A stretch of DNA of 64,000 nt from assembly GCA_050084985.1 (NCBI GenBank), contig JBITNC010000001.1:45880001-45944000 (forward strand), in the 5' to 3' direction. A program made the translations under genes and the position numbers. The number at the start of each line of letters is the position of its first letter. The first letter of the stretch is position 1. Below, one piece after another: positions 1-33,193 of the stretch. This DNA comes from Nageia nagi (lineage: Eukaryota > Plantae > Pinophyta). Under the pieces are notes generated by a model. That model searched no databases. It saw only the letters and a program-made list of their open reading frames with translations, and had not been told where the DNA came from.

Positions 1-453
1 ATGTATGCTTCTTCTACATTGTTTAGTATATGAATTTCATAGTATGTATTGGTTGAGTGATTGAAAATGGGTCCAATCTTCTTCTTCATTCTTTGTTAAT
101 GCTTGTTCAACTCTATGATACAATGGATAAGGCACTGATATGAACTATAACTTAGGTTGGTTAGGGGTATTAGGTCATATTTTCTCTAAAAAATCATCAT
201 TTCCCTTTGAGTAGAATAAAAACCAATGATCTCAAAGCTTAAAATGCTTTATTCAATGGAGATTGACTTCGGGTTACAATCCCAGGCCAATTGATTAATC
301 AATAGGTCTAGTTTCATTCTCATTTGATCTAGACTACCTAAAAAGAAGGTTAGAGTCAAATAATCTCACATACCTATTGATAACTAGGAGGATTAGCACT
401 TGGTGAAATTCATTTAAAAGTATTTTTCAAAGGGGTATTAATCTATCACAATA
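1..453 (+). repeat. 5' LTR (3' portion) of the Athila-like element
   Basis: Colinear with ~19943-20397; ends ...AAAGGGGTATTAATCTATCACA(ATA) just before the PBS. Exact end uncertain by ~3 bp. Confidence 0.8.
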
Positions 454-458
454 ATTTT

Positions 459-476
459 TGGTGTCATTAACAGGGA
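459..476 (+). promoter_or_regulatory. Degenerate primer-binding site (tRNA-Asp type, Athila-like)
   Basis: TGGTGTCATTAACAGGGA matches TGGCGCCGTTGCCGGGGA, with differences that are mostly C>T/G>A transitions; it lies immediately after the LTR. Confidence 0.65.
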
Positions 477-789
477 GAGAGATAGTTGGAGAAGCTATAC
501 CTTTCTAAGAATGACATATTCAACACTATGTTGAGGAAAGAATCTAGAAATAAAATATGATTATAATATCTTTGGTACTAGTGAATTTATAAAAATACAA
601 GAGAAATTGAATCTTTAAGGTATTTTTCTTATGGAAAAATCTACATTTCAAACTACTATTGAATGGATTGAAATATATAACACAAAGAAGCATGGTAATT
701 TTCTTATATTGGTCATTACTTTGGTTATTATTTCAGTTTGAATATATAGAGCTGAATTTTTAGGCATTGTTAAGATGGCTTTTAAAGTA

Positions 790-1149
790 GGCTCTAAAAA
801 ATGGATGTTGGATAGATATAAAGCTTTGAATTTGAATGAGTTTATGTTTACTAAACTTATTCTAAATATAGTATTATAAAATCTCCCAAAGTTTTAAGGG
901 AGATTTAATGAATCATGTGAGGTACACTATAATGAATTTATAAAAGTGGTCAATTATTATGAGATTGAAGATGAGGATATGGCTATGAGAATTTTCTATG
1001 AGTCTTTGTCAGGAGAAGCTCAAAGTTGGATTAATAGCCTACCCATTACAAGCTTAAAGGATTTTGGTCAATTAGAAAAAAGTTTTTTTTTCTTTGGTTT
1101 AAAGTTGAAGAAAATGAAAATCTCAAAGTTTATCAGCAATGTGAAATAG
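790..1149 (+). pseudogene. gag: Retrotransposon gag remnant (Athila-like element)
   Basis: LPKF*GRFNESCEVHYNEF...EDEDMAMRIFYESLSGEAQSWINSLP...FGQLEKSF resembles the Retrotrans_gag signature (F..SL.G.A..W..SLP); stops and frameshifts are present. Confidence 0.8.
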
Positions 1150-2339
1150 GGGTAGAACTTATTGAGGAAATTCTTTTGAATCAAAGGATATTATGTTCAA
1201 AGAAATTCTAAATGATGAAATGTGGACTCTTAACAATTTACATGGTTATTCAAATGATGAATATCAAGTATAATCACACGATAATTTACTTGAAGATATT
1301 GATTCAAAAAATAGTAAGGATTTGGATGATATACAAGAAAAATAAAAATGTATCAACATAAAATTATTGAATTTCTTGAGGCTGATAGTTGTGAGATAGA
1401 GTAAATCATTCATCATGATGAAGTGTTCATAGATGTAAGAGATATAAATGGTAAACATGACTTTGATGAGTTTTTAGTAACAAAAATAAATATTGATTTA
1501 TCTTCCTTATTATTGTCTTCAAGTATTTCATTACCATAGTTTAGTTTTGAACAATAACATGAAATGCAAGATCTGATTAAGACTACCAATTTGGGATCAA
1601 TTTTTAGAGTTTGGTTTATTTTATTTTCAAGTTGAGAAACAGTTGTCCATAGACATTGATTTTGATAAATTAGCTTATGATGTTATCTATTGGAATATAA
1701 ATTTTGAGAAAAATACATTTTTTAAACAATGTGCTAAGTTCATAATTGAATCTACAAGATTTCAAAATACACTTCCTAGATGATAAGAAAATTCATTTGG
1801 GTAAGTTGAGATGTTTTGTAAATCAAAAGAAGAAACTTTGGATCAAGTTTAAAAAACATTGCCATTTTGCAAAATAGATGAGATATTTAAAAATTTTGAT
1901 TCAAAAAATCATAACCAAATGCCACACCACATGCCAATCTAACCTTTGTTGGTTAAATGAGTATAAATTACTAAGTTACTTTGCAATAACTTGAGCACAT
2001 TTTGAAAAATGATTGGTTATGTTTTATTTTTCTTAACCTTGTCATAAATTGTATAAATTTAGAGTGGTTTTTACATATTTTTTAGTTTTTATTTATCTTA
2101 GAAATAACCTAGAATAATTAAAAATCTCAATTGATTCCCTTTTGATTCAACATTTGTCCTAGATAGAGCATGTGTTGTAACACAACTATACCCCTTCTCA
2201 TAGGGGATTGATTAGGCTTCCTTTTTAGCAAATATTATCATTAAGACCCAATTTGGTCTTTTCATTACCCATAATTAATTATCATATGAATGTAGAAAGA
2301 AAACTTTATCTAAAAACATGTGTTTGATGGAAAATTAAG

Positions 2340-2830
2340 TCCCATTAGGTAAGGAAAATGATTATTAGGTAAGAGTGTCTTTCATTTGATAAGCCTTAGT
2401 TTTATTAGTTTTGGTAATCAAGTAAGAATGTTCATTGTAGGTAAGTTCAATCATCATTAGATAAGGAAAGAACCTATTAGGAAAGGATAAGTATCATTGG
2501 ATAAGGATTCACTTCACCAAGTAAGGTTACAACTTGTCAAGTAATTTGATTCATTATTGGATAAGAGTGTTTATTATCGAATAAAATCTATTATCATCAA
2601 GTAAGAATTTTACCCATCATATAAGGTCAAAATTCATTAGATAAGAGATCAAATTGTTGGTTAACTTTTGTTTCTATTAGATAAGGGGTGTGATTATCAA
2701 ATAACATTTATTTTATCTAATAAATTTCAAAAAAAAACTAAATAAAGCTTTTAATTGGAAGAATAAATAGTTACCTTATTAGGTGAGACTCTTGTCACAT
2801 CAACTGAAGTTCTTCACATTAGGTAAGTTG
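2340..2830 (+). repeat. Degenerate ~20-21 bp minisatellite, core CATYRGRTAAG
   Basis: Recurrent CATTAGGTAAG / CATTGGATAAG / CATCAAGTAAG / CATTAGATAAG at ~20-21 bp spacing. Confidence 0.65.
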
Positions 2831-2999
2831 TAAGGTAATCATAAAAAGTAATCTTGAAGATTGTAAAAGTTTATTAATTTCTTTTGAGTATTAGGGAATC
2901 ATAGAAAACCATAATTGAGCCATAAAATTAACCCTATAAGCCAAAATAGCTTGCATTTTTATGGTATCAATTATGATTTCCATGCTTTATCTCAATTAG

Positions 3000-3718
3000 A
3001 TAAGAATGATAGAAATTCTAAAAGTAGTAATCTTAAACAATGCATTTGGAGATGAATGCAGCTATAGATCACTAGGATCTTGAGGAATTTATCATAAAGG
3101 GATTATCAAAAGAGCAATTCAAATTTTGACAAATAATAAGAATTATGTTTCTTTCTAGAAGTTGATAACATATACAAAGGTGTAATAGACCCTCCTGAAT
3201 ATGAACCAAGGATGATGTGGAAGCTATATAATATGACAAAATAAGGTGCACAACTAGGGATTCATCAATAAAATTGATGGAATTTCAATTTGGAAAAGTT
3301 AGTATGCCCTAGGTTCATTTTTTCAATGACCTTTTGAATTGGTTAATTCAAAGATATGATCCTATTAGGCATAACTTTGTAGATGATAGAGGTTAGACAA
3401 TATTAGAATTAAAAAAGTATAGGATTAGGAAAGCTTTCAATCTTTAAAGAAATGGTAACCCCTTTAACTTAGCTACTTTCCAAATATATTAGTTCTTTGT
3501 GGGAGATTTTAAAACTTGTGCTATGTATCAAGATGAAATACCCCTATATGGCCATGATTCTTTTCCTTTGAGTATATTTTTATTTAACTAATGTGCTAAA
3601 TTTTATCATAAAATATTATCTACATGCTAGGGCATAGAAATCATTTGTTTATTCCTAGGGAGGTGTTTTTCTTTATAGTAAGAATTGCCTTTACTCCTCT
3701 TGATGTGTATGATTAGGC
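3000..3718 (+). pseudogene. 5' part of a decayed additional ORF of the Athila-like element
   Basis: Removing the 3719-17035 insertion and one TSD gives a continuous reading FTPLDVYDWTSYLFKRMDNELVN. Product unidentified; start approximate. Confidence 0.45.
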
Positions 3719-3742
3719 CATGAGGGGGTCACTGTTAGGAAA
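3719..3742 (+). repeat. Left terminal inverted repeat
   Basis: CATGAGGGGGTCACTGTTAGGAAA; imperfect inverted match to 17012-17035. Confidence 0.8.
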
Positions 3743-5736
3743 TGGTAAATACCAGTGAGTCATACTAAGGGGTATTTTTAATTTCAAGTTTACTTATTGG
3801 TATATTGGTATGTATTTTATAGAGGGAGGGGGTAGGGGTATTTTAAAATAATAAAAAAATATATATTGATATTAAATAAGGGGTTGGGGGGAGAGGGGTG
3901 AGGGGGGTGCACTGGGGTAACACGAGGGTGGGAGACTAGGGGGCGAACCTCTATCAGGTTGATAGTAGGGGAGAGGGTTGGGGAGTGGGTGTTATATTCA
4001 ATTTTGTAATCTAAATTTTTTATAACTTTAAGTTTTCAAAATATCAATAATTCAATAACCATTTTCTATTTTTTATCTAGCTAATTATAAACTCCTTTGA
4101 ATTATTTTTTACCATAAATTGTTACAAGAAAGATAAATTCAAAAATTAATCTATTTATATATATTTAATCCAAAATAATTTTATTATTATATTTGTTACA
4201 TTTCAAAGAACATATAAGAATATAAGTGTATATTAATAAGTATTACAATATTAGAACCTTCATAAAATTTGTTGATGGGAAGAGACAAATGTCAAATCTT
4301 CATCCTTGGCAGGTTGCACATAGGCTCGAACCATGATACCCATTACCAACCATGATCCAAACAAATTGAAATGATAAACTTTCTTAGACCTTTGAGGAGA
4401 CATTTGAGGTATATTATCTTTCAATTAATGTTTGACCATAATTTGGAAGTAAATTATGTTTAGAACCTTATTAACATATTCCATCGAGAAAATGGAGTAG
4501 CATTAATTGCTAAGGAAATATCCAATGTTACCTTACCATGGAGCTTAGTTATGTAGTTGGAGATGAAAAAAATTAGGGCTTAAAATGAATGCCTCCCTCA
4601 CAAAACCCCTAAATCATTTTCACCATGTTAGAGAAGGAAAGAAGAGGGGAGCTATGGGAGAAAAAACCCAGCCACCATGTGCATGGAGACCTCTTAATTT
4701 GGTGCAGGAAGCTATTGATGATTTTGTGAGTTAAAAATGGTGCTTACTCTTCATTTTTTCCTCTTTGTTTTGATTTTTTTTTTCTATAAGGGTTGCATTA
4801 GAAATCTATCAAAAAGTATATAGTGATTTTTTCTTTTATATAAGCATTTGAGGGCCATGCCACATCCAAGAAGAATATATTAAGGTATTTTGAGATATGA
4901 TATTTGGGTCATTTTTTCTCTATAGTAGTATATGACATATCTAGACTAGAGTGCTATATCCAGTATCATTGTGTTGTTTGGAAAGTATCTTCAAATCATT
5001 ATTCAGCAAAGTAGTCCACATTGATAATAGTGACTTTTTGGAGTATTTTTTCAACATTATCTTATGATGAATAGCATTTATTTCATTTATGTCTCCATGT
5101 TTATGACAAAACCTACCTTAATGCATATTACTTTGCACAAAGTAGTCAATTTTTTCTAGTCTTTAGTAGTGCATAGTTCTTGGACAAGATTTTGCATGTT
5201 GCTTCTTGCCTTTAATCAAATGCCTTCTTGATGTTTTGCATATATTGAACACATGGCATTATAATTTCCCCAAGCACCTATTGTGAAGAATTTTGTGAAT
5301 GCTATTTCACCTTTATTCTCCATAAGCAATTTCTATATGTTGAATAGTTTATTATGCTTAACTAACTATGAATTTAACAATTATAATAGGTTAATTGTAG
5401 TTTTTTCTTGTGTAGTGAGTCCAAATAATAAATTTTTGATTATCAGATTGCATCTATTGACAATAGACAAATTGCTATATGGACTATGCACTTCATATAT
5501 TAGGGGGCATTGGGTTTTCATGAGGTTGTTTTATGTGTCATCAATACAGTCTTAGCTTGCTTTTTTAGTTTTTGATACACTAACTATATGAAGTATTTTC
5601 AGTACATTGAGTATTGTATGGAGAAATGGGATTTGAGATATTCCTAAGAAGTCAAATATTTCTTGGAATGTTGTTACATTATTTTGAAGCTTGATGTGCT
5701 TTCAAAAGTTTTTAATTTTTGATTTCATATTTGTAG

Positions 5737-5850
5737 GAATGCATGGTTAGCTTGTATGCAGTGGATGTAGAACTCTTCTTATCTATTTGTAGGGTGCAAC
5801 AAATGTTTGTTGTGTAATGTGCAACACATTAACTATAGTTCCACCTCTTG
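5737..5850 (+). pseudogene. LSD1: Captured exon of an LSD1-family gene (first LSD1-type zinc finger)
   Basis: From ATG 5739: [35 protein letters not shown], matching the LSD1 finger CxxCRxxLxYxxGAxxVxCxxC. Bounded by TTTGTAG| and |GT splice sites; both stops are TAG, consistent with CAG>TAG. Confidence 0.9.
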
Positions 5851-6899
5851 GTTCACATCCCAACCTTAGTACTTTTTATATTTTTATTTTCTTTTACTTT
5901 TATTTTACACTTGTTGAGACCATTTCATTAGGATATTGATCAATATGGGAAGGAAACAATTGTTCATGTCTATATAATAAGACCTGTAGAAAGTGTGTAT
6001 TTTGTTCCTTATCTTGCTAGTAATAGTTTTGTATTGGCTATGATGATTGAGATGCATCTATGTTTAGAGATATTGATATAATGTTACCAACAGTTGCTGA
6101 ATAGTTAATGACATAATCTCTATGTTAAATTGGTGCACTTGGAATATAACGAGAAAAATGTCAAATACTTGAGATACATAGATCAAAGTTAACTCTTTAA
6201 ATAAAAAATATATATCAATTATTATAATGTTGGTTATCATCAATATGGTATTTTCCATAACAAGGAAATATTTTGTAGATGAACAAAGAAAACATGTGCA
6301 AGTAGTTTGGCTTGATGAGGATACTAGAAATAATCCTCTCATTTAGGTGTCTAATATTCTCATCTCAAAGACTTTCATATACTTTTATCACAATAATAGG
6401 GTGGAAGGATCAAGAAGGAAGAAGTTTTTGGATTCCAATCTTTAGACCCTGTATTTAGTTTCTCTAAGAATTGTTGAAATGAGCAGAGTCACAATGATTT
6501 CATTAAAGTGGAATATCTTGCTTCTATTGCTTGTGTTTGGTCAAGTCAATGGTTTTTACTTAAGTCATAATGATTTAATAGTGGATGCCATATTATGGAT
6601 TCAATAAATAAACAAATTGTGGTAAATGATGAAGCATATGCTTTATAAAGGGAAAAGTAAATTCTAAATACAAAATTGGTCTATATGATAACATCTTGTA
6701 TCATCTAAAATGATGCATGTTGATGATAGATTAAGTATATTAATAAAAAAGTAGCTAGGACAAATATGAAGATGAGACATATAGAATACCATCTCATTAT
6801 AATGGAAGTATTTTTTTTAGCTTTTGTATTACAAATAATAATGATAGTCTTTTTTTAGCTTGAGAGTATTTAGCTTTAGCATTTGTATCTAAGATAAAT

Positions 6900-7800
6900 T
6901 TCCCAAGAAAGTTCCATCAATGGAGGCTTCAATGTTATTCTAGATTGGTATTAAAATTTGTACTAATTTTAGAACATAGTTTCATTTCTTGATAGCTAAA
7001 TTTGCTAATGTAAGTTGTGTATAGTATTTCATCTAGAGACTTCCAAATTCCAATATTTCTTTGATCTTCCATTTGTGAAAATACCTTTAACATGATTCCA
7101 TCTTTGTGTGGCTTGATAGTTTTGTTTAATAAACCACTAAATTTTATTCCAAATTTAACTTCCCATTGATCATTGAAGAAAATGATGAGTAGATTTTTTA
7201 TTTTCTTTTGAAGCAAAACATCTATTCTCAATTTGCTATAGATAATCTCCAATGTGAATAATCTTCTTCATGTAGGCATAGTGAACTTTGCTTGGCCTAA
7301 GGCACTAAGTAGCTTGGAATAACTTTGTGCAAGTTTTAACATGCCAAGATTGATGGCAACTTATATTGGATCTTGTAAAATAAGGAATTTCATTTTTTGC
7401 ATCCTACTTAAAAAAGATCTTGAAGTATTAAATCTTTTATTCAACTTCCAATTTGTAGTCACACTTATTACCACTAAGAAATCTTCATTTATGAATATAT
7501 GCACAACCATCATACTAATACCTTGGGTTTAGGTTTACAAGGGTTGCTTCATCATTTGTACATAATCTAAGTCAAGTGGAGTATTATTTTTTTCCATTTG
7601 AATGCATTAATGCCTCTTCTCACTGATCTTGATTTGCCTTTGCTCTTCTCTATCAAACATCAAGGCTTGCCAAGTTTTGGAATGAAATGCAAGTAGGGGC
7701 ATCTTGATCACATGACTTGTAGGCTTCCTTCTGAGTAATAAATTCCACTATTTTCTCAAGAAATTATTATTAAAACAAGCAAACTCAAATTTGTTATAAA
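6900..7800 (-). pseudogene. Possible highly decayed LINE ORF2 fragment inside the transposon cargo
   Basis: Weak motifs only: PCKPK (cf. W..lC.PK..GGLG) and IIFFNDQW (cf. I.FW.D.W) in and upstream of ORF 6935..7252. Confidence 0.25.
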
Positions 7801-8044
7801 CTTATTGACTTTCATCAATGCCAACTAAAAGAGATTTAATGACCATTAATAGCATGAACACAAATGAAGATTTGAATCAGTAACTCAAAAGCTTTTCCCC
7901 TATATGAGATTTGTTGTTTCTTATTGCTAAAGTACATGAAGTGTTTAGAGTCAATATTTATTATTTAGAGTAACTTTTTACTGGGAACTTCCTATTAATC
8001 TAAGCTATAGAGTGAATCTCTAGTTATTCCTAGCAGTTTTTGGA

Positions 8045-8575
8045 TTAGATTTACATTTAATTTTAATCTATTATATTTAAATTATATTTTTTAATATTTT
8101 TTTATCAGATTTTATTTTTAATGTTTTTACTATATTTAAGTTTAATCTTTTAAGTTTTATATTTACAATTTTATTTTTATATATTTAAATTTTTAAGTGT
8201 AATGTTTTATTCTTTATATTTATATTTACATTTAATTTTAATATTTTATATTTAAATTATATTTTTTAACATTTTTTATTAGATTTAATTTTAATGTTTT
8301 TACTATATTTAATTTTAAACTTTTAAGTTTTCTATCTACAATTTTATCTTTATATATTTAAATTTTTAAGTGTAATATTTTATTCTTTATATTTAGATTT
8401 ACATTTAATTTTAATATTTTATATTTAAATTATATTTTTTAATATTTTTTTATTACATTTAATTTTAATGTTTTTACTATACTTAATTTTAAACTTTTAA
8501 GTTTTATTTTTACAATTTTATTTTTATATATTTAAAATTTTAATTGTAATGATTTATATAATTATATTTACATTT
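8045..8575. repeat. Extremely AT-rich tandem repeat, ~174 bp x 3
   Basis: TTTACATTTAATTTTAAT recurs at ~8050, ~8225 and ~8398 with colinear downstream sequence (ATGTTTTTACTATA, TTTTAAGTGTAAT). Confidence 0.85.
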
Positions 8576-9409
8576 AAACTGAACCTCTCCAAAACAAAAT
8601 AGGATAGCTTGGTAACATGGGCATGTGTTAGGTTTGAATGGCTAAAATGTAAATTATTGGTGAGGAATAGGATTTTATGTGGAAGGCACAAATATAGATT
8701 ATTCTTTTGATTCAAGGACCATAGTTGCATAGGAGATTGCATAGTGGATGAACAATTTTATGCATCTTTGGGAAAGGAATACCTTTAGATGCATCGAATC
8801 TTGTGAGTACATGGCTTTCATATGAAAGTATTTTAGGTTTTTATGTGTGTATAGAAAAATTTGGGTGGTCTTGACATCGTCAATCTCATATGGTATTGTG
8901 AATGTCTTAATGACATTCACCTCTTGAAATATTTATGCAAAATCAAATGTATCCTCATCTTTTTGTTGATTTTCAAATCTTAATATTGCTTATATGCATC
9001 CAACCTAAGGGGGAGAGATTTTAACCTAGGCCTCTATTATGAGAGTTTTAATATACCCTTTTTCTCTAGCTCTCTTATTGGGTTATTCGTAATACTATGA
9101 AATGTCATTTTCATATGCTTTATTGTTAATGAGACTTATGTTTCCTTATTATATCAATAACATTTGATTCTTGCACCATAAGGGTATAAACCACATAATT
9201 TTTAGATTGGTTTAACTTTGACTTATCATTATATCAAAATAATAACTTTAGCAAGTTGAATTCTAGATTATATGATAGCTCAAATTGTGTAAAATGCCTT
9301 TGTGTTTATAAAATATTTCTATAAGGATCTACATTATCCTTTGTAAACTTATATATAATAAATTTATTTTGTGATGATTATTTCTTCAGGTTTATTCTCT
9401 TCATACAAT

Positions 9410-12400
9410 ATGAATGAAAAAATAGAGTATTATCTTAAAGATACAAATGGTGAAGTTGTGGCTATAATTAAACTTAAGAATGCATGCACACTTGGTGATG
9501 TTTGAGAATATTTGATATTTTATAATATTTGTTTGAGTATATTAGTAAAGCGGGGATTCCTATCAAGCCAAAATAAGAGGACACATGTGATGTTGAAGAA
9601 AAAATCATTAAGTTTAGAAGAAAATTAACAGAGCTTGGTGAAGAACTTATGAATCATGGAAAAAAACAAAAGACTAGACCAACAGACAATGATAAATTTG
9701 AAGTTCCACATAAAACCATTGAAAAGCATATTAGTTTACAAGAATCAATAGCATGTGAAAATATTAATGAACATCCAACCTCGATCAAAGCACAAAGTTT
9801 GATTGAATATAGTATTAGGGAGTTATGGAACTCCAAATTACTAGAATTGTTACTTCCAATTGAGAGTATCAATCTTTAGTTCTCCTTGGATAGTGATAAA
9901 CCTATGATAAAACTTCATTGTGATGTTTGTAATGTTAATTATGGATCAGGTGATGTAACTAGAGTTGGAGATACTATGCATAATTTTAGAAGAAGCCATA
10001 TAATGTCAGATCGCCACATAAAAAAAAAGAATTCTCATAATTCTGGTCAAAATATAACATGTGAGAAAGATTTACTTGATAAAGAAAGATATGATACATT
10101 GGATTATCATGATAAGATATTACATGCAATCAATGTATTTGATTATTTCATTAAGAAAGATATTAGTTCTCCATTCAAAGTTGTGGAATCCATAATTGGA
10201 GATTACAAAGATAAGACTTCTATAAAAGTGGAATGCACAAAATGTAAAAAATGGTTTGCATTGATCCCCAAGATAGGAAATATTGTGACTTCTCTCCCTA
10301 AACATATAAAATCAAAGTCACATAATCAAAATTTAACAAGTCAAGTAGCAATAAATATAGGTTTAGTGGGGTGACCGAAGAAGGCTTCAAATGATGGGAA
10401 ACAACAAACTTTGTCAAAATTTTTATTTCCTAGTTCAAGCAATCTAGGAGAAAGGATCCACAAGCACAATAACTTCAACTCTAGGTATTATTTGTTTCTA
10501 TGAGATTTTATATAATTTTTTAATAATTCATTAATATTTTATTAATAACATGCAATTTCTTGTATAGGTTTTCTTTCTTTGTCACTCTTATGTTGGGGTT
10601 ATTGGAAACCAAAGGAGAAATATAATGGAAGAGAAACAAATGTCAAAATTTTAATGGATGATCAAAGTGGTAGGAATGTAACATTGAACCTCACACAATA
10701 GGTATAGTAGAATACCTATTTTGTAAGATTACTATTGATGGAACTTACAAGCATAATAAATATGAAAGAATATCTAAAAGAGAAATACCATTTGAGTCAT
10801 TATCATGTCATTTTTGTTCAAATATACCAAATTACAAAGATTTTAGAAAGCATTTGTATTAAAAACAACTTACTATAGTGAAAAGAGACAATAGAAATAC
10901 AATAAAAGGAAGACAATTAGATTATTTAACACACCATGAATTGCAACAGTATGCGAGAGTTTCTTCAACACATTACAAAGTAGCATTAAGAACCATTTGG
11001 TGGAAAAAAACCAAGGTTGTAAGCTTATCAATAAGAAATAGATCATTGAAGGAAAAATTATTTGAATCATCTCAAAGAAAGGATGTTTATAAATTTTCTT
11101 GAGATGTATGTGAAGCACATGAATTGGGAAAATTAAAATGAAAGCAAGCATTATGAGATTTTGTTCAAGATTTAATTCAAAATTTGCTACGTTGTAAGTA
11201 AGGTAGAAGATTTATAAAATCTTCAGCTATAATATATGAATTGATCAAGATATGGGGGGGTCCTTATTTACATAAATTTCTTAGTGCAAATTTAGATGGA
11301 CCATCATTATCTACAACTAGAAGGCAAACTATAAAGGCTCTATCTTATCTTCCAAGAGATCATGAATATATCTTTGATGCAATTAGGAAAATATATGTAA
11401 CACATAAAGCAAGCCTTGGCATTAAAGGTTATGTTCTAGTGATTCTTGCAGAAGATGAAATAAGAGTTGAAAAAATTGTGAGGTGTTTTATGACTTTCAA
11501 TTCTAATTTTGTAGATAGTTAACACTATAATATTTTTTATTATATGAATAGTAACAATTATTTTATAGGTGGATTGCAAGCAAAGACATATTGGTTGGAT
11601 TTTGTGGGGGAATTGAACAACATCAATGCTAGTCAAAGTTTTCCATTTTAGTAGGAAAAAATGAGGATTGTTATAATATAATTATTAATGTTTTTTAGGA
11701 TAATGAAATTAGTTATCATGCTAATTTTGTTCAAGATTAATGGATCAATATTGATAATCTATTGAAGTAATATGTTGAAAATTCATTAGGTCTAGTTATT
11801 GGCCATTCTTTCGATAGAGATAGTAGGTGTAGACAATTAATGTTGAAAAGTTATACTTCTAACAATGGAAAGAGATTTAGAATTCCTTAGGAAGGAAGGA
11901 AATTATCTACAACAATATTGAATGATGGTAGTATAACTGGGCTTCATGATCAAGATTTCATTCATAATGGAAAAAAACTAATTAATCCACTATTTAGTGG
12001 TAGGTGGGATTTGATATTAGGAACTAAGTTAATAATGTTTAATCATATAATTATTCTTTATAATTCATTCATTATGGAGGAGCATCAGCTAACAAATGAA
12101 TATATAAAAAAAAATGATCGACAAAATTGGGGATTAACATAATGCATTACATCCAGGAATGTGCAAAGATGTTTAAGAGAGATAAGAAGTCCTTCTAGGG
12201 GTAAGACAGAAAGAACCTTAGGTACTAAAATGTACTTATCAATGGTTGCCAACTACATTGACATATTCTTATTTAATAATTTAAGTATTTGGGAAAGATT
12301 GAGATATGCATCTAGAGTGTATCATTTTTTGACATTATGGCTTTCTTGAGTATGAAATAATGCTACTATAAATGCCCAACTAAATTTTATTAGCAATGAA

Positions 12401-13788
12401 GCATATCAAGATGTAAAGATTTCATGTCATTTTACTGTACTTTTGATAAATCTGTTTCAAGATATATATCCTTCTTTATCATGCATATTACATTCAATAA
12501 GATCAGATGTTTGTGAATTTGTTTTTAGTAAAGTAGGTGGTATGGTTGGACAGGAAAGGGCATATGATTTTGTAGATTTATTACATGTAATTGGAAGCTT
12601 AAACAAGGTATCAGAAGAAAAAAGTAATCTTGAAGGATTATATATTGGAAAAGCTCATAAAAAATAAGAAAATTTATGGCATAAGTTAAATCCAAAAATG
12701 AGAGAGAAGTGTGGATTTTTATCAGACTATAATTGCATATCTTCTGATATTGATATTGTAGAAGCTCTTAAGCAAGGATTAAAAGATGCACAATATGATC
12801 TTGAACATTTTATATACATCCTAAAAAATTGAATATGGCTTATGGTGGTTTAAGCCATGGGATTGTGGTAATAATTTTCCTTTAGTGGAAGTAGGTGAAT
12901 GTGTTGATGTTTTTCTAGTAGAGAGTTCACATTTAAACACTATTTTTGATGGAGTTTCTAAAGATTTAAAACATATACAAAATGAAACTAGTTCATCTAT
13001 TGATCCATATGTCATGGAGAGTGAATGGCAACATGAAATTGATGAAATATTAAATCATGTAGAAAAAATATATACAAAAAAATTAGTGTAATGGTAGAAG
13101 TGGATGGAAAAGAAATATATAAATCAACACTTGTTATTCAATTGAATGGAAACCCCAAATTATCAAAATATAGGTTGATTAAAGTATGACATGGAAATTA
13201 TTTTCATTTAAATGAAATTTTTCTAATATTAGAGAATGCTTCCTACTTAAGGATTAGGTCTAATTGTGGGGTTTTATTTAAGCAAGAATTATCATATTTG
13301 AATGATTGATCTCAAAGAAAGGGTATTCCATGCAGTACTAAGAAAGGTGTTTGAAGTGGGAAATGGTACCATGGAAGAGTGAAAAGGATGAGGAAAAATG
13401 AAGACAATAAAGTGGTTGAATATCGTAATCCAATAGATCTATTGGACTATCTAGAAGATGTTGAGATTCAATTGAATTGGTATAATAAGATAAAAGGTCA
13501 CATTGATTCACTTATAATTTGATAGATCATGAATTTGTATCATTATAATCCATCATTACAATTGCTAATCTAACATATTTCTCTCAAAAGGATTATTATC
13601 AATTGGAGGAAAATGATTTCAAAATATTTAATGATTATGCTAAAAGTTTGCAAAAAGGTAGGATTCAATCATTTTTAGTAAGTTATATGATTGCATTTTT
13701 TTTTAATATTTTCATTTGTTTGAAGTTTTATTAATTTTAATAATTCATGAATGCTAATATTTGAATTAATATTTTAGATCAAATATGA
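9410..13788 (+). pseudogene. Intron-containing P-element-like DDE transposase, decayed
   Basis: GT-AG introns 10485-10567, 11483-11568 (splicing gives in-frame KIVR|WIASKDILVGFCG) and 13658-13777. Motifs in order: two C2H2-like fingers (ORF 9886..10374), GGPYLHKFLSANLDGPSLST, ILAEDE (D1 ~11454), GHSFDRDSRCRQLM (D2 ~11813), HDQDFIHNGKKL (DxxH ~11952), DRQNW, SDVCEFVFSKVGG (E ~12515). Many stops and frameshifts. Confidence 0.85.
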
Positions 13789-16700
13789 CACGGATAAAAA
13801 TTGCATTTGTGATAAGGATACATTTTATGTGACTTTTCATAGGTACTATCTTTTTTTCTTATTGCACATTTACAGTTATTTTTTTTTTTTTTGTATTTAC
13901 ATTTACATTTACAATTGATTATTTTATGATATTTTGTTTTTTTTATGCATATGGGTTTGAGCAATCTTTTTGTAGGTCAGTTCAATGCCTTTCTTGTGAT
14001 GATTTATATGTGTCTTATAACTTTCAAATGTTACAATATTTCTTATCTATAGATTTTAGTTGCATTTTTTGCATTAAATTAGCATTCATGAATTTGTTTG
14101 TTTCGAATTCCTTGAATAGTTATTTGACTTTTCCTATGACCATTAGAGTTACAAAAATCATGCACAAAGAATCATATAATTGAAATAAAAGCCAATAATA
14201 GTTGTTATTTTATAGCTCACGACTTGTAGTATTTCTTAAAAAAAGATAAGCCAACATTCTTCAAAATAATAACACTTTGATTTCTAACACTATTTATCAT
14301 TTTTTCTCATAATATGGAGGATTTATGGAGCTCAACTAGAAAATGGTTGGATTGAGGAGGATATTTTTTATACATCAACCATGTCAAAAACTTCATACCA
14401 GTATTTAAAGATTTCATTAAAGACTTGTTATTTTCAGTTATACAATGATAGTTATAATTATTTTTAGTTTGGAAGTCTTTGTTATTTTTAGTTATATAGT
14501 GAACAAATAATGCAAATAATGAGTTGTTGATGTTAGAAAACACACAAACTTTATAGTATCTTGTAACTCATGAGTTGTACCTTGTATCAGTTCCTTTATC
14601 ATCATCTCATCAGATACTTATTAAGTTTTGGATCTATGTTTTAGAATTCTTATTTAGTATAATGAGTTCTATATCCCTCTAGTGAAAGTATAAATGTATT
14701 TTTCCTTTCCATGTTACAAGTAATGCCTCCTTTTTTAGTATGGGATGTCCATGGTGATTGTTTCTATCACTAGACTTATGTATAATTTTGCTTTTATATA
14801 CTTATTTTGTCATATTTTGGCATCCATGGATCTTAAAGTGCATTGATTTTTGGTTTGTCTATCTTGTGTTTAATGAGAGGCATGTTTATATCTCTAATTT
14901 CAATTTTTTAGTATACATTTGATATTATCTATTGTGTTGATAGTGCAATTTATAGCTTTTCCTATTGAACACCAATATGTATGCATCATAGGATGATGGC
15001 CTTTAATATCAAGCCAAATAATTGGTAGCCCTCACCTAATTTTCTTTGGTATTGATATACCAAGATACATATATGTGCTTTGGTATTATATATATTAAAG
15101 AGTTGATGCCTTATTTTTCTTATTTTCCTTAAATTTTTGGGTAACTTGTAATATTGTATAACACATCAATTGTTATAGTGTAGCTTCAGTTGTTTTCTAG
15201 TTATATTAGCACCAACAATCATGGAGTTGTTTTCTACTTTGATGGCTTTGTTGGATAGCTCATGATTGCTACATATATTATTTAATGGTGGCAATATTAT
15301 CTTATTAGAAATGTGTTATTTTTTGCACTTTAAACTCTATAGCAATAATTAACATTTTATATGATGATATTATTTTATTAGTGTGAACTCCTTTGCTATG
15401 ATTTGGGATTCAATCAAAACAACCTGTAATTCACATAATTTGGAGAATTGCCTTTATTTATTTATTTTATTTAATTATCATATTTTTTATCTATTATACC
15501 TTACTCCTTGGTATTGCTATTTTTTTGTTGTTCCTATACTATATTATGGTTATTTGTGAACTAGAATTTAGTTCTCATATCTTGGACAACTGAATAAACT
15601 TCTTTTGGTTAAAAGTAATAATTAATAATTGTTCCATTTCTAACAACTATATGTGTTTTTTTTGATAGTGCATGGTATTTCTTAGTTCAAAGGAAAATAT
15701 TTAGTTGTATTAGCTATATATTATATAACATACAATTATTCCCTAATTATTTGGGGTAATATGTGGGTATTAATGAGGGCTTAACCTCATGTTGTGCATC
15801 AATTACTTTAAACATGATGACTAGATGCTTCTTCAATTCCACATGTCATAATAAATTTCTTTAGGGAACAATTGCAATTCCACTATTTATTGAAGAAGCT
15901 TAGATCAAGCACTTTTTGTAAAATATGCAAATACATAATCAAAAAGTAAGGGCATAACCTTTTATAACATAAGGGGAAGAACCTTAATTATTTATAAATT
16001 ATATCTAATTATGGTTGCATAGTTTTCAACATCTATGCAAAACTGTGATAAGCTTGAAGTACTATTTTTTTTCAATGCTTCTATAAAGTGCCAATTAGTT
16101 GAAAAAATCATGATAAATTGGAGATACTAAAAAAAAGCAAAACAATCATGCAAGTAGTTGAAAAGAACTTATTTATAATTGGAATTTTAGTCAACACACA
16201 ATGATTTTTACCCTTCATATTTCCATGTGTTTTTGAAATGTTGATTTGTTCCTGATTAATTGTTGGCATATTTCCAACAAATAATTACCATGGAATTACT
16301 AATAATAATTTTTCAACTATGGACTATACATATGACAACAACATAATATGTTATTTTTCCTAATACTAGACAAGACACAAGACTAACTAAAAAATATACA
16401 AGTAAAAGTATTTTGTCTAGGCACACCTTACTCATTATTTGAGGAGTAGAGAAGGGTTGGCTGTTAGATAGTCTAGAGAAGTTTGAAAGGAATATGATAT
16501 ATAACATATGTTTAATACCATTTTGGCTCTCCACCCCCAACCCTTGGCTACCACTGTAGTTACACCTCTCAACATAATTATATATAGGATAGGATAGTAC
16601 AAGTATAGCATTGTAAGAAAGTCGAATACCAAGTTTGAAAATGTTCTCAATTTTAATCATTTTTTTCACTTTGAAGTGATCTTATTCTGCACATTACTAT

Positions 16701-17011
16701 TTTAGATAAATTCTTTTTACTCCATCTTAGGAGTCAACATTTTGGGAAACTTTAAATAATTGGAGAAAATATTTTCGATTAAAAAAATTTTGAACCACTA
16801 TAATTCTAGGTGATGATATCAAAGAATAAAATTACCAAAGGTATTAAAGATTGATCTATTTTTTTTTAGTAAAATGGTAAGTTTTAAAAAGAGATTATTA
16901 TTTATTACATAAGGGTTTACCATGAGGGGTTTAATAAATTCAAATTGAAGGTAGTAAATTTTTAAAATAGGGGGTTTTTTAATAAGCTTACGAACACAAA
17001 TGTTTTGAATG

Positions 17012-17035
17012 TTTTCTACTAAGTGACCCACCATG
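17012..17035 (-). repeat. Right terminal inverted repeat
   Basis: TTTTCTACTAAGTGACCCACCATG, followed by TSD copy GATTGGAC. Confidence 0.8.
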
Positions 17036-19400
17036 GATTGGACTAGTTATCTTTTCAAAAGAATGGATAATGAGTTAGTAAATTAAAAAAGGACTATGAA
17101 GCAAAAATAGATTTACACTTTTCTAGGCATTCCATTTTACTCCATGTTATTATTTCATAGCTTGAGGGTAGTTTGGTTAGGGAACTAAGTCCTGATGTTA
17201 AATTTTGCATTGTGTAAGAAATGCTACCAAATATTTATCAATGGGTAGGTAGCTACCAATGGTTTAGTGAGGTCTTCTTGAAAAACATCTATTACAAGTT
17301 TACACAATCTATTCCAAGAATATTTGGTCATTTCCTAAACATTTTAGATGAATTTGAGGAAAGAATAATGATAAGAATGTTAAGATGAAACTTAAAACCA
17401 AATTTGTTTCCTAAGTTCTATTCTGATTCTATTTTTTATGAGGAAGCTATAAGAGAACTTGTTGAAGATTTCAAAGTGAGGATTGGTAGAGAATTGGGGA
17501 AATATCATTTCTTTAAGTAACCATGTGAAATAGGTCATAGGATATTTAATAGTGCCCATTACTTTATTAATACTCTACATATTATGGATCAATATGGTTT
17601 TAGAAAGGTTCTTTGGAGGCCATTTGATACTTATAACAAATTTGCTAAAATTTGGATTAAATCAACTAATTTCAAAGTTTCTCATGATGAGGATGAATTT
17701 CAAGATAAGGTGATTCAAGCATTGAAAGAAAGAAAACCCTATTTAGGAAAAGTTTGTTTTTGATAGAGGTGTTTCCATTTATCTTTAGTTAAATATATTT
17801 TAGAGTAGCTAAAGAAAATTAGGAAAGGTACCATTGATACAATGGAGCCTAAAGTAGAAATAATATATTACAATTAGAAGAACGATAATTCATTATAAGC
17901 TATGTTGAATAAAGAGCCTAAAGAAATTTTGATTCATTATCATCAACCCATTGTGGAGATAGCTATAAAGGTAGAAGAAGAGAAAATGAATTCAAGAAGT
18001 TTAGCATTATTTCCTCCTTATAAACTTATTCTTTAGTCTATCATACCATATTAGAGAAATGCTATGCAAGAAGAAATGTTGAAAAGGTTAGAGAAGTGTG
18101 AGACCTTGTTGACACAAACATAAATTTTACCCAAAGGTATTATTGTTTAGGGAAAAAACATTCTTATGGATCTCATTATTGCTAGAAAGTACTAGGCACA
18201 AGGCTTTATCATACCTCCTAGATATAAAATTTATGTACAGAATATTGAAGATGATTCACTAGCTAAGAAATTGATAATGGAGGAAGCTTCATCATCATCC
18301 TCTATGGCCCCTCATGAAGTTTTCAAAAAATATTTCACTTATGTAGTTATGCTAGTAAAGGAGATACCCAATGATTGAGGCTCTCTAAATACCTCAACTT
18401 GATGATCCTTTAACAATAGTATCTTCAAAGGATTTAAAAGAATTAGGTTCTCCTTAGACATTTTTGACTGCCCCTTCATCTCCTGTAAAAATTCAAGGTG
18501 AAAGAAAATATAACGGGATACTTATTTCTTTAGAGGATCCAAAATAATCATCAACCTAATTAGTTGAAGAGGTTAGTGAGGTTCTCTTAGAATTAAAAAA
18601 GATAGTTCATTAAAAAAGATAGTTGTTGAAATAACACTTGATAAAGAAAGCAAAAATTAGAGAGTGAATAGAAAGAGCTTGATATAATAAAATGGTTATT
18701 AAAAAGGAATACTATAACTTTTAAAGGAATAATAATCATAATAAAGTTATTGAAAACTTTAAAGGATATGATTATAAAAGTTGATGATTAGACTCTTGCA
18801 ATTTTGGGGGGAAGGAACCAAATTAAGTCAGGTTTTGATTTAATGAAGGGAAATCATAAAGTTCTATTCAATAATTTAGTGATAGGTACAAAGTATACCT
18901 TTGGATACAAATCAAATAAAATTTATTCAGCTAATGTAATGTACAATAAAGCTAAGTTATTTGTGGGTAAGGTAATGTAGTCAATAGAAGACCTAGAAAA
19001 GGAATAGAGCAAAATATAATTGATAGATGATTAATATATATGAGGAAGAACCTAGTGATAAGATTGAAAAATTAAAATCTAGATTGATTGAAATTCCTCA
19101 AGGCATAGATCAAAAATATGAAAAATCTCTATAAGTTACAAATTAGTTTGCAAAGATGGAAAGATTGATAGGTAATTATGAATCAAGTTTTCATAATTAT
19201 ATCAAGGAATTAGTGGTAATAATTTAGATCTTGCATGGATTACCAAATTTCACTAAGGAGGAATGGAATATATGTGAAAAACTATGTACAAGTTCTTCAC
19301 CATATATTAGTTGAGATAAGAAAGAAATAAAGAATCTATTTTACCAATTCAAGGAACATGTATAGTTTTGGGCAGAAGTTATCTAAGATACACCTAGTAG
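17036..19400 (+). pseudogene. 3' part of the decayed additional ORF of the Athila-like element (K/E-rich, coiled-coil-like C-terminus)
   Basis: Continues the frame interrupted at 3718; purine-rich coding-like composition with many stops; not recognisable as pol. Confidence 0.4.
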
Positions 19401-19499: not shown

Positions 19500-20397
19500 T
19501 ATAATCTATAAAAGGAAGGGAGTAGTAGGGAGAAGGATCTTTTGCCAGTCAATCAAGATAGTTACATATGGTCTGTGGTGTATGTTTAGGGTTTTGTCAC
19601 TCAATTTTTTAGTCTTATTATGTCTTTTGTTCACCATTTTTAAAGCATGTACTATGTGATTTTTAAGAAATATTCTAGAGAATAAGGTTATATTTTTTTC
19701 ATCTTGCACCCAACTTTCAAGTAGTGTAGGTTAGAAGCATTTTTACCAAATATTGTCACATTATTTAGGCAATATAATGCAATTGTAATCAAGAAAGGCA
19801 TTGGATATTATATTAAATTTTTATGAAATATGATGATGTATGGTTGCAATATTTCAAGGGCATTTCCTTTGTTATATTTTCCTAAGATTATGTGATGTGC
19901 TATTGTGTGTGCTTTATTTATTATTATAAGTATCAAATAGTGAATGAACTCTTTTTCTACATTGTTTAGTAAATGAATTTTATAATAAGTGTTGGTTGAC
20001 TGATTGAAACTGGGTCTAATATTCTTCTTCATTATTTATTAATGCTTGTTCAACTTTGTGATACAATGGATAAGCATCAATATGCATTGTAGCTTAGGTT
20101 GGTTACAGGTATTTGGTCATTTTATCTCTAAGAGATCATCATTTCCCATTGACTAGAATAACAACCTTTGATATCAAATCTTAACATGCTTTATTCAATG
20201 GAGATCGAATTTGGGTTACAATCTTAGGCCAATTAATTAATCAATAGGTCTAGTTTCATTATCATTTGATCTAGACTACCTAAAAAGGAGGTTAGATTCA
20301 GATAATCTCACATACCTATTGATACTTGGGAGGATTAGAACTTAGTGACATTCATTTGAAATTCTACATCAAAGGGGTATTAATATTTATCACATCA
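19500..20397 (+). repeat. 3' LTR of the Athila-like element (start approximate)
   Basis: 19943-20397 is colinear with 1-453. The start is guessed from a PPT-like stretch near 19466-19495. Confidence 0.7.
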
Positions 20398-27099: not shown

Positions 27100-29477
27100 A
27101 AAGATCAATATATTAATGACTCAAGAATCCAAAATAGTTTATCTGGGAGATGTGTTTAATGAGTTAGAAAGAAGAAAATCCATAACCATTATTAAAATAT
27201 GTTCCAAGATGTTTGCATTTTATTATCAAGATATACCAAGAATGGATCCTAATATCATTTTCCATAACATTTTTATGCATCTTGATGTTAAGCCAATTAA
27301 GTAGAAGCCAAATATGATCAACCCTTCCTAGTCATTGCAGAGTAAGGATGAGCTGTAGAAGTTGCTAGATGCCAAGTTTATTAGTCCTATAGATTACCCT
27401 CAATGGTACTCTAATATGGTCTAAGTTAAAAACTAGAAGGTCATATAAGAATTTTCACTAATTTTAGAGACCTCAATAGAGCCTATCCCAAGGAGGATTT
27501 CCCTTTACCCAACATAGATAACATGATCAACAATATGATAAGGTATGGTATGCTTTCCCTAATGGATGAATTTTTGGGCCATAATTAGATTTGGGTGCCT
27601 TCTCAAGATCAACATAAAATATCATTTACTAGATCATGGGGGATATTCCATTACAAAGTGACACCCATCAAGCTTAAAATATTAGTACCATATATCAGCA
27701 TAAGATGACCTATGTTTTCCATGATATGATGCATGATATTGTTGAGGATTATGTATATGACCTATTGGAAAAGTATAGAACAAGGTACCAACCTTGGGAG
27801 GTCTTAGAAAAGGTATTTTAAAGGTTGACCAAGCACAAACATTAGGTTGAATACAAGGAAGTATGCCTTCATTGTCACTTCAAGAAATCTATTAGGATTC
27901 ATTATGTCTAAGAGAGGCATTGAGGTTTACTCCAAGAAAGTTAGTTCCATCACAGTATGCCTTTGCCTCATGATGTGAAATATTTAATGAGCCTTCATGG
28001 AAACTATTAGGCCATAAAATGGTCTATAGATTAATTATTTAATAAGTTTAGATCTTTTAATGAGCTCCTCAAGAAAGATATCCAATTTGAGTTGAATGAA
28101 GCATGTCAACAAGCCTTCATTAATATTAAGCAATATATGACTACTCCTCTAGTGCTAATTCCTCCTAAGGATAATTTACCCTTTCATATATATCTTTCAT
28201 CTATTGAATTTGATTTAGGCATCATGCTAGCTCAAAAGAATGAACAAGATAAGGAGAAAACTATTTACTACCTAAGTAAAACACTTGTGAATTACGAGCT
28301 TAGGTATGTCTACATTGAGAAGGTTTATATTGATGTTATCTTTATGGATAAGAAGCTCCAATACTACATGTTAAATAATTCCACTTATGTGATTTCTAGA
28401 GAGGATACATTAAAGTACATGATGAGAAAATCCTACCATAATACACAAACAATTAAATGGATCATGTTTATGTTTGAGTTTAACCTATTCTTCATCAATC
28501 AAAATAGTCAAGGGTAGGTCACAACATCTTGGTTTGTTGAAACACCTATACAAGATACTTACCCTCTAAAGATCACAATTCATGATAAGATGTGTTAGAA
28601 TTTATGAGACATAAGAGTTTATGGAAACCCAAGATGAGTATAACATAAATTTGTACTTTTATGGTTTGAGATACGAATAAGGGGGAGGGGCTAAAGTTGT
28701 CTTCTTCACCCCTAAGGGGGTCCCCATTACCTTTTTCAAACTTGAATTTTCATGCATAAAAATAATGTAGATATGAGGCATTGATTTTTGATATAAAAAT
28801 ATCCATAGATTTGAAATTTGAAAGTCTCTTAATCAATGGATACTCTCAACTAGTTGTGAATAAAATCACGAGAACCTATCAATATCATAATGAGTTATTA
28901 AAAGTCCATAGGGACATCACATTGCAACTACTTAAATGGTTCAAAGAATACAAAATTGAGGTATCCCCTTAATCATCCAAAAAATTTCTAACACAATGGC
29001 ATCACTAGGGTCACTTATTTCACCCAATTTCCATCAACACATTCAACACATGGAGATAGTGACTTTGAAAGAGTTTGCACTTAAGGCACCTTTATCTTAG
29101 GGTCTTCCACTACATCAATTCATGAAATCATATTTAATCTGCATGATTTATGTTATAAATAGTTATATGAGTATATTAAGTGGAATTCATTACCTCCTAA
29201 CATGTATTTTGGTGAAAAATGGATGTTCAAGTAAAAGGGTTCTCATTACATCATTTTAGGAGATATTGTATACAAATGATTATATGAAAAAGTTCTACTA
29301 CGTTGCTTAGAGATTTTTGATCAACAAATCATAATATATACATTTCATGATGATATATATGGTGCAAACTTCAATAGAACTACCATTACATAATGTATAT
29401 TGAGAATGGGGTACTATTGGCCCACCATGGAAAATGATTTTATGGAGTATGTTAAGAAATGTATCAAATGCTAATAG
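27100..29477 (+). pseudogene. pol: pol remnant: RT, RNase H, additional (archaeal-type) RNase H, integrase zinc finger
   Basis: FRDLNRAYPKEDFPLPNID, LSLMDEFLGHN*I, VEDYVYDLL (RT); ORF 28092..28517 (RH); LYFYG..GGGAKVVFF and INGYSQLVVN (aRH); LRMGYYWPTM...VKKCIKC (INT N-terminus). Confidence 0.9.
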
Positions 29478-29728
29478 TGTGAGGTAGGAAATTGCTCCAT
29501 GCATCAAAAGCATTGTATTAGATTGTGTAACTTCCTTAATACATAAGAACAATGAATCTTCATATTCAACTCCTTGGGTGACCTTTGAGATACAAAAAAA
29601 CTCTTCATACTACCTTAGTAATGACACTTTAAATTCTAGCACACACAAAGCTTTGAATTTACTAAATATAATATGTAACTATTAATATAATATCTATACC
29701 ATAATCCCTAAGGATTAGGTATATAACA
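29478..29728 (-). repeat. 3' LTR of old copia
   Basis: TGTGAGG...TATAACA, colinear with 44219-44469. Confidence 0.92.
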
Positions 29729-29749
29729 TTGCCTCCTTAATCCAAATGA

Positions 29750-31300: not shown

Positions 31301-31437
31301 TTAGAATCAAAGGAAAATTCCATATCCTCAACATCATCACCTAAATATGAACCCTATACTGCTCTATCTTCAATTCTATCTCTATAGGAACTCCTAGTTC
31401 CCATATTTCCAACTTTATCAAGATGAACACTCTCAAG

Positions 31438-32966: not shown

Positions 32967-33170
32967 ATCTCCCCCTTTGGAATTATTGACAACACCACTT
33001 GATCAGACACCAACATCGGGACTTTTCTCTCCCCCTTTGTCAACAATAACAAAGGGCATTTACAGACTCCCCCTGAGTCCATACATGACATTCTCAGGAA
33101 ATCAGTAGTATGCATACAAAAACAAGATACATAGAAGCAACATAGGAAGGAAAAAATAAACACTCCCCCT
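32967..33170 (-). promoter_or_regulatory. Multiple polypurine tracts
   Basis: CTCCCCCT (AGGGGGAG on the minus strand) at 32969, 33029, 33067 and 33163. Confidence 0.88.
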
Positions 33171-33193
33171 AAGAATGTGACATCCAGAACTAG

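Follow-up and report, generated by a model that had tools for sequence, protein, structure and literature searches.

We analyzed a 64,000-nucleotide stretch of the AT-rich genome of Nageia nagi (contig JBITNC010000001.1; the window) and found that positions 3719-17035 very probably arose by one old insertion of a cut-and-paste transposon of the autonomous type, one that belongs to a divergent branch of the P/THAP9 group. The insertion is 13.3 kb long and is situated within an old retroelement flanked by long terminal repeats (LTRs). Its transposase gene is decayed, and the best structural match of the intact relatives of that gene is the Drosophila P transposase, in agreement with an earlier note on this DNA that had described the element as P-like. 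The tests that the note had named as decisive all favoured P over hAT, MULE or Kolobok.

The insertion is bounded by imperfect inverted ends of ~24 bp, CATGAGGGGGTCACT and CATGGTGGGTCACT, and one indel is required to align them as terminal inverted repeats (TIRs). The left TIR, CATGAGGGGGTCACTGTTAGGAAA, is at 3719-3742 on the plus strand and has the core GGGGGTCACT at the same offset as the TIR of a complete relative, L020 (described below). The right TIR, identified by comparison of the ends, is at 17012-17035 on the minus strand (reverse complement CATGGTGGGTCACTTAGTAGAAAA). Past these ~24 bp, the similarity between the two ends was no higher than in shuffled controls. Directly outside the TIRs is an 8-bp target site duplication (TSD), with its left copy, GATTAGGC, at 3711-3718 and its right copy, GATTGGAC, at 17036-17043, immediately after the end of the element at 17035. 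The two copies are identical at 6/8 positions and both mismatches are G/A transitions; based on the base composition of the window, the probability of at least six matches by chance is ~0.009. The sequence therefore agrees with the 13.3-kb unit, the ~24-bp imperfect TIRs and the 8-bp TSD with two G/A transitions that the earlier note had described. Its further claim that the element is complete holds for the two ends, both of which are present, but not for the coding content, because the transposase gene has 23 in-frame stops.

The left end was compared with contigs of four public sequencing runs (from four coded organisms in three studies), which were aligned to positions 2519-4918 at ≥80% likeness. 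Over 3639-3718 the summed contig depth was ~38-53 (X1, X2) or 4-7 (X9, X4), while over 3719-3798 it was 1,680-24,293, a jump of >100-fold at 3718/3719. Depth was 106-7,845 over 3799-3878 and dropped again beyond 3878, and from 4279 on the interior of the element was low copy. Dozens of contigs per run, in 4/4 runs, had loose ends exactly at 3718/3719, and the continuations of these contigs past that point differed from one another (agreement ~0.4). This combination of loose ends and unlike flanks marks 3719 as the true end of a repeat family whose copies occupy many different sites. The terminal ~130-160 bp of the element (3719-3878, plus strand, as delimited by contig depth) are common to this very high-copy family, which is MITE-like (MITE: miniature inverted-repeat transposable element). 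From ~3847 on, the abundant family has its own consensus (agreement ~0.8); its elements are shorter, of the non-autonomous type, and have no more than the terminal ~130 bp in common with the long copy in the window. A second, smaller depth peak (100-750) was present at 3959-4198, ~240 bp from the left end and preceded by a low-copy gap, and may belong to the abundant short family or to some other repeat. No public sequencing run contained more than small shares of the transposase region; two air metagenomes (X3 and X8) contained small shares of its words, which would be explained by airborne pollen from the host or a relative.

The confinement of high copy number to the first ~130-160 bp, together with the departure of the family from the window copy after ~3847, raises the alternative that the 13.3-kb unit is not one transposition unit, and that a high-copy MITE end at 3719 and an unrelated but similar end at 17035 enclose the transposase remnant by chance or after rearrangement. 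The imperfect TSD, the length of the element (twice the 6.1 kb of L020) and the ends of another relative, L021, which match without a TSD, could be read in the same way. We consider this alternative quite improbable. Neither a further copy of the end motif nor a second copy of the element was present within the 64-kb window, and the two ends are inverted with respect to each other and lie on either side of a transposase from the same family in which intact members bear this motif. In addition, the flanks match at six of eight positions with transition-only differences, the host element resumes on both sides of the insertion and is bounded by LTRs, and the closest kin of the window element, L046, likewise has ~5 kb between its gene and its right end.

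Inside the element, the sequence CATGAGGGGTTTAAT at 16921-16935 (plus strand) matches the left end at 12/15 positions in direct orientation, 100 bp inside the right end, and GGGGT(A/T)TTTTAA-like motifs are repeated near both ends. These repeats could be due to chance (0.73 such matches are expected) or could be putative subterminal binding sites. Upstream of the transposase, an AT-rich unit of 173 bp is repeated 3.1 times in tandem at 8045-8576 (91% matches), and a short open stretch at 5793-5936 (plus strand) has a sub-threshold Pfam zf-LSD1 match (E 0.0045; 17.3 bits, cut-off 20.2).

When the piece at 12356-12664 was compared by a full HMMER scan with 1.84 billion representatives, 185 relatives were identified, many of them ~1000 residues long. 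The named ones, listed as "hypothetical proteins", come from three liverworts (Riccia sorocarpa, R. fluitans and Calypogeia fissa), a coral, a brittle star and a sea spider; the others are metagenomic. A search with one of the relatives, P0205, returned named proteins of comparable length in liverworts and the sea spider only, and none in seed plants. Two chimeric gene models of Nymphon striatum (P0486 and P0489) have two to three tandem LAEDE regions fused to a viral alkaline-exonuclease/YqaJ-like domain, and probably derive from nested transposon fragments.

A scan of metagenome contigs of the Joint Genome Institute (JGI) yielded 80 loci. One of these, L020, contains a complete 6.1-kb element with a perfect 26-bp TIR, CTCGGGGGGGTCACTCCTCATAAAAA, a perfect 8-bp TSD, GTTTTCAT, and a single intact open reading frame (ORF) of 1498 codons. 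Three other loci (L014, L015 and L017) have one common right end (...CCCCGGG) and three different flanks. In L046, which belongs to the P0205 cluster, the right end is CACGGGGGCGTCACTG, which is nearly that of the window, CATGAGGGGGTCACTG. The ends of L046, L023, L016 and L021 all fit 5'-C-N-Y-G-R-GGG..CACT. In strict TIR and TSD scans of 31-33 loci both ends were found only in L020, and the length of the TSD could be read in two cases only, the window and L020. In L021, inverted CCCGGGGGGAGCACT ends at positions 308 and 9065 are 8.7 kb apart around a transposase of the family, but their flanks do not match (3/8 positions); L021 may represent two separate elements or one that has been rearranged.

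The Drosophila P element has CATG termini and 8-bp TSDs, and the earlier note had drawn attention to the CATG with which both ends of the window element begin. The ends that it drew are the ends of the family, but CATG is not a family hallmark, because relatives begin with CTCG, CCCG, CACG or CTTG. From comparison of the sequences, the conserved portion of the ends is C-N-Y-G-R-GGG..CACT.

The transposase gene of the window is at ~9616-13731 on the plus strand and is dead: in addition to the in-frame stops, it has at least two frameshifts, the reading frame changing from 1 to 3 to 2, and one deletion has removed 28 residues within the RNase H fold. The database searches used separate stop-free pieces, and the tree described below used one contiguous frame, 11570-12793, with an X at each stop. 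In tblastn comparisons, P0205 covered 10683-13731 with its residues 12-1015, at 51-53% identity in the core; the 1498-residue ORF of L020 was colinear over 9616-13498 (E 7e-134); and another relative, P0067, matched the window gene with E 5e-77. The core of the pseudogene (10683-13731, plus strand) has the order Cys finger, coiled coil, helix-turn-helix (HTH), split RNase H with a helical insertion domain, acidic linker and C-terminal beta domain. It is preceded at 9616-10662 (plus strand) by a decayed N-terminal extension with two CxxC...H...H finger-like motifs, which is colinear with residues 96-440 of the L020 ORF. An open piece within the extension (9880-10371) matched the N-terminus of L020 in BLASTP with E 2e-6; nevertheless, the extension is the weakest part of the gene model.

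All five protein motifs reported in the earlier note were found on the plus strand. AEDE, at 11448-11459, contains the putative first catalytic Asp (column D249 of P0067, on strand beta-1 of its model). GHSFDRD, at 11801-11821, is in the family alignment the second catalytic Asp motif, for which the family consensus is GHSSDGD, and in the window copy an Arg replaces its invariant Gly. The motif DQDFIHNGKKLIN, at 11948-11986, has the pattern D-x2-H-x2-K-x3-N and marks the start of the helical insertion domain; H425, K428 and K429 of this pattern are invariant in the family, and D422 and N432 are nearly invariant. DRQNW is at 12116-12130, in a stop-free piece, and SDVCEFVFSKVGG, at 12503-12541, holds by family alignment a D-x2-E pair with the putative catalytic Glu (family D603/E606). 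Farther downstream, at 13355-13519 (plus strand), a remnant of the C-terminal beta domain, which is BAH/Tudor-like (WYHGRVKRMRK...), aligns to P0006 and L020.

The comparison with the P transposase structure that the earlier note had proposed was made with the intact relatives P0067 and P0205, and P came first with both. For P0067, an AlphaFold model built with 36 relatives (predicted local distance difference test, pLDDT, 80; predicted template modelling score, pTM, 0.71) was compared with the PDB using Foldseek. The first match was 6p5a, the Drosophila P element transposase (E 1.2e-11), followed by Transib (9e-4), RAG1 (~1e-3) and Hermes (0.07). VIA-align gave Z 23.2 for the same model, pairing its residues 116-640 with 128-565 of 6p5a_A (412 of the chain's 442 modelled residues aligned), a span that takes in the HTH, both RNase H halves and the helical insertion domain; the next scores were 10.6 for Transib, 9.2 for Hermes and 9.1 for RAG1. 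A Foldseek-independent structure search returned the same top match, with the next at Z 8.5. P0205 is, among the intact relatives, the closest to the window copy, and with its model Foldseek again placed 6p5a and 6pe2 first (E 2e-9, template modelling score 0.73), with the next match at 2e-3.

These comparisons also bear on whether the element is a divergent hAT, the common plant superfamily with 8-bp TSDs. The hAT elements (e.g., Hermes and Ac) are like the window family in their 8-bp TSD, their short TIRs and a helical insertion domain within the RNase H core. Such an origin would be compatible with the 8-bp TSD and the short, imperfect TIRs of the window element, and Hermes is present among the fold matches. 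However, the Hermes match is much weaker than that to P (Z 9.2 over 291 residues, with a root-mean-square deviation, rmsd, of 7.6, versus Z 23.2 over 412 residues; Foldseek E 0.07 versus 1e-11). Furthermore, no hAT Pfam domains, including the dimerisation and BED domains, were found in any member, and the family motif is D-x2-H, whereas that of hAT is C-x2-H. We therefore regard a hAT origin as extremely unlikely.

Sequence-derived signals also point to P. In a protein language model, the neighbours of the family are P transposase clusters carrying PF21787, PF21788 and PF21789; the top neighbour is a cluster without a name, in which few members have an assigned taxon, most of these being Basidiomycota. 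PF12017, the Pfam model of the P HTH domain, had weak matches in 4/36 full-length members (best E 3.2e-5), and in two Nymphon members PF21787 matched the LAEDE region at 7.7e-13 and 8.8e-8, aided by repeated stretches. The Pfam P profiles that the earlier note had suggested as a check thus gave a divided answer, as the eight stop-free pieces of the window had no Pfam match (including to PF21787, PF21788, PF21789 and PF12596) and the 36 members had none to the catalytic models. Likewise, phmmer comparison of three window pieces with PDB sequences gave no relevant match. The link to P is seen through fold, language-model features and weak Pfam matches, and not through plain profile-to-sequence search.

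The P/THAP9 group (Drosophila P, vertebrate THAP9 and zebrafish Pdre) is the sole strong structural match of the family, and the two are alike in their 8-bp TSD, short TIRs and transposase domain order. The P transposase uses GTP as a cofactor and makes a 17-nt staggered cleavage of the donor; TSDs of the group are 7-8 bp long. In the P0067 model, the invariant D249 is on strand beta-1, D369 is just after a beta strand, and E606 is in the helix that follows the helical insertion, an arrangement from which we infer a fit to the RNase H fold. The D-x2-E pair of the family (D603/E606) resembles the D528/E531 pair of the P transposase, in which we take E531 to be the catalytic Glu. D528 is a GTP-binding residue of the P transposase, in which a DNA-binding finger, a coiled coil, an HTH, an RNase H split by an all-helical insertion and an acidic region follow one another (PMC7776569). 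The differences from P are also considerable. Identity in the structural alignments is only 12-15%, no THAP domain was detected in the family, and a BAH/Tudor-like domain is added at the C-terminus. The sub-lineage of the window and L020 has an additional N-terminal finger region, the TIR sequence is unrelated to that of P except for the CATG of the window copy, and the hosts include land plants.

Several of our observations weigh against the assignment of the window element to a P-like transposition unit. Regarding the protein, PF21787, PF21788, PF21789 and PF12596 had no match in the 36 full-length members, and a profile of these members found no P or other transposase match among PDB sequences. 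No Pfam match to the THAP domain was found in any member or in L020, and the consensus of the N-terminal finger, C-x10-C-x2-C, is unlike the C2CH of THAP. The equivalence of the DDE and putative GTP-binding residues to those of the P transposase is tentative at the level of single residues. Because solved structures of Zisupton, Novosib and Kolobok are absent from the PDB, a best PDB fold of P is not enough by itself to exclude these superfamilies. Regarding the unit, the TSD of the window is imperfect (6/8), and a clean TSD with both ends is present in one relative only, the ends of L021 being matched without one. The read evidence covers the left end alone. Lastly, ~7 kb of the 13.3-kb element are unexplained, and the intact relative L020 is only 6.1 kb long.

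The case against Zisupton, Novosib and Kolobok rests on Pfam, the language-model neighbours and the TSD. Kolobok has a 4-bp TTAA TSD (Repbase classification) and is ruled out, as the flanks in the window and in L020 are 8 bp and are not TTAA.

For Zisupton (KDZ), the likeness to the family extends to the 8-bp TSD, transposases of 1000-1500 residues, some fusions to a zinc finger and Ulp1, and a patchy distribution across animals, fungi and algae. Two distant metagenome relatives, P0236 and P0237, have a ZZ/FYVE-like zinc finger and an Ulp1 protease (Peptidase_C48) after the transposase core. The combination of a zinc finger with an Ulp1 protease is a domain mix typical of Zisupton. An 8-bp TSD is made by Zisupton as well (PMC12730594). 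The Pfam model PF18758 recognises Zisupton proteins, the original one included (PMC9297572), but it was absent from every family member tested: no match at E ≤0.1 was found in the 36 members, P0234-P0237, P0225 or P0160, and none in P0205 or P0208. Pfam, language-model and fold signals all point to P, and we think it very unlikely that the element is a Zisupton.

Novosib is a poorly defined superfamily that was first described from a green alga and that has 8-bp TSDs (Repbase classification). It is unlikely, though somewhat less so than the other alternatives, that the family is Novosib and already named as such in Repbase, in which case the P-like fold would be a property of Novosib; this alternative concerns the name and not the mechanism. 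In its favour, Archaeplastida are the primary hosts of Novosib, of which only ~10 transposases are known (bioRxiv 10.1101/2021.09.26.461848), and an RNase H domain was cautiously proposed for Novosib and later not confirmed (PMC5751038). In contrast, active elements of Novosib or P were not found in a survey of 1007 plant genomes in which a Novosib profile had been used (PMC12973397), and the family of the window is large and rich in animal members compared with the tiny Novosib set, with which it was compared by description only.

The C-terminal domain is one of the parts that the family has in addition to those of P. This beta domain, which follows the acidic linker, matched the PHF19 Tudor domain in the P0067 model (residues 837-940; Z 7.5, rmsd 1.9 over 55/57 residues). 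In models of relatives it matched the BAH domain of Rsc2 (Z 7.5) and also that of AIPP3, and in the plant-clade model P0205 it matched the BAH domains of DNMT1 and AIPP3. Pfam gave an Agenet match of E 0.046 only. The modelled domain thus resembles BAH, Tudor and chromo readers, with moderate scores, and a fusion of this kind suggests that insertion may be guided by chromatin.

Overall, the enzyme very probably had a Cys finger, a coiled coil, an HTH, a helically split DDE core, an acidic linker and a BAH/Tudor-like domain, preceded in the sub-lineage of the window and L020 by an N-terminal extension that appears to hold two extra finger-like motifs before the Cys finger. We hypothesize that this enzyme recognised the C-N-Y-G-R-GGG..CACT ends by binding to them, cut the element out and inserted it elsewhere via an 8-bp staggered cut, possibly using GTP as the P transposase does, and its C-terminal reader-like domain may have steered insertion to chromatin. 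Short non-autonomous derivatives with the same ends would have been mobilised in trans, which could have led to their high copy number. The copy in the window inserted into an LTR retroelement that was already resident and later decayed, mainly by transitions.

In a tree of the transposase core (438 columns), the window sequence was sister to P0205 with a Shimodaira-Hasegawa-like approximate likelihood ratio test (SH-aLRT) value of 99. The two were placed within a 17-row clade (SH-aLRT 97), which also includes L020, the liverwort proteins and metagenome sequences without a name; the coral, brittle-star and sea-spider proteins were in other clades. The liverwort proteins are the named relatives nearest to the window copy. 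This topology fits a plant-associated clade, as far as the sequences allow, but is no demonstration of vertical descent, because most rows lack an organism name and the tree lacks an outgroup.

The presence of a divergent P-like lineage in land plants is supported by these data. The earlier note had pointed out that P is absent from the superfamilies usually recognised in seed plants, and this agrees with the literature: a 2022 review of land-plant transposable elements lists six TIR superfamilies, with P not among them (PMC9033089), and the 2025 survey of 1007 plant genomes, which screened for P with Pfam models, reported active elements of seven superfamilies, neither P nor Novosib being one of them (PMC12973397). 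Our literature search found no paper describing P-type elements in bryophytes or gymnosperms. P-type elements outside animals are represented by fungal families that Repbase assigns to P, in Pucciniales and Allomyces (PMC5751038), which we likened to the window family by description only. Novelty is not proven, as invertebrate members may already be under P in Repbase or Dfam.

A broader view of the family, which we put forward tentatively and at somewhat less than even odds, is that it forms an unnamed deep branch beside P/THAP9, old and widely distributed among eukaryotes, which lacks THAP and has a BAH/Tudor-like chromatin-reader domain. The plant clade of this branch would have persisted from liverworts to a gymnosperm-like seed plant and would be the source of a very abundant MITE-like family that current plant transposable element pipelines based on the Pfam P models cannot assign. 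If the P-like reading of the window element holds, land plants have one more TIR superfamily, and a high-copy repeat family of large gymnosperm-type genomes gains both a candidate autonomous partner and a superfamily assignment. The Pfam P models of the 2025 survey miss the window family. Intact relatives such as L020 represent a second, very distant P-type transposase, and could be used to test if the dependence on GTP and the unusual cleavage of the donor are ancestral to the group, and what role the fused BAH/Tudor-like domain has in target choice.

The retroelement that hosts the insertion is delimited by two LTRs on the plus strand. Its 5' LTR (8-450), which possibly starts before the window, is 86% identical over 445 bp to its direct repeat, the 3' LTR at 19951-20394, and a weak Retrotrans_gag match was found between them at 898-1146 (E 0.016, Pfam). 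The P-like element is situated between both LTRs of this older retroelement, which bears out the proposal of the earlier note that it transposed after the host retroelement had inserted. The note had also reported that removal of the element restores the host reading frame. An open stretch is indeed present there, but it adds little, because it is just 38 codons long and lies in a flank full of stops.

Elsewhere in the window, long open frames of Ty1/copia retroelement genes are present at 28092-38198, each of them on the minus strand. These genes are gag (37374-38198), integrase (35448-36257) and reverse transcriptase (34425-35324 and 30634-31227). The nearest named proteins to the integrase are from copia elements of Cryptomeria and Pinus taeda.

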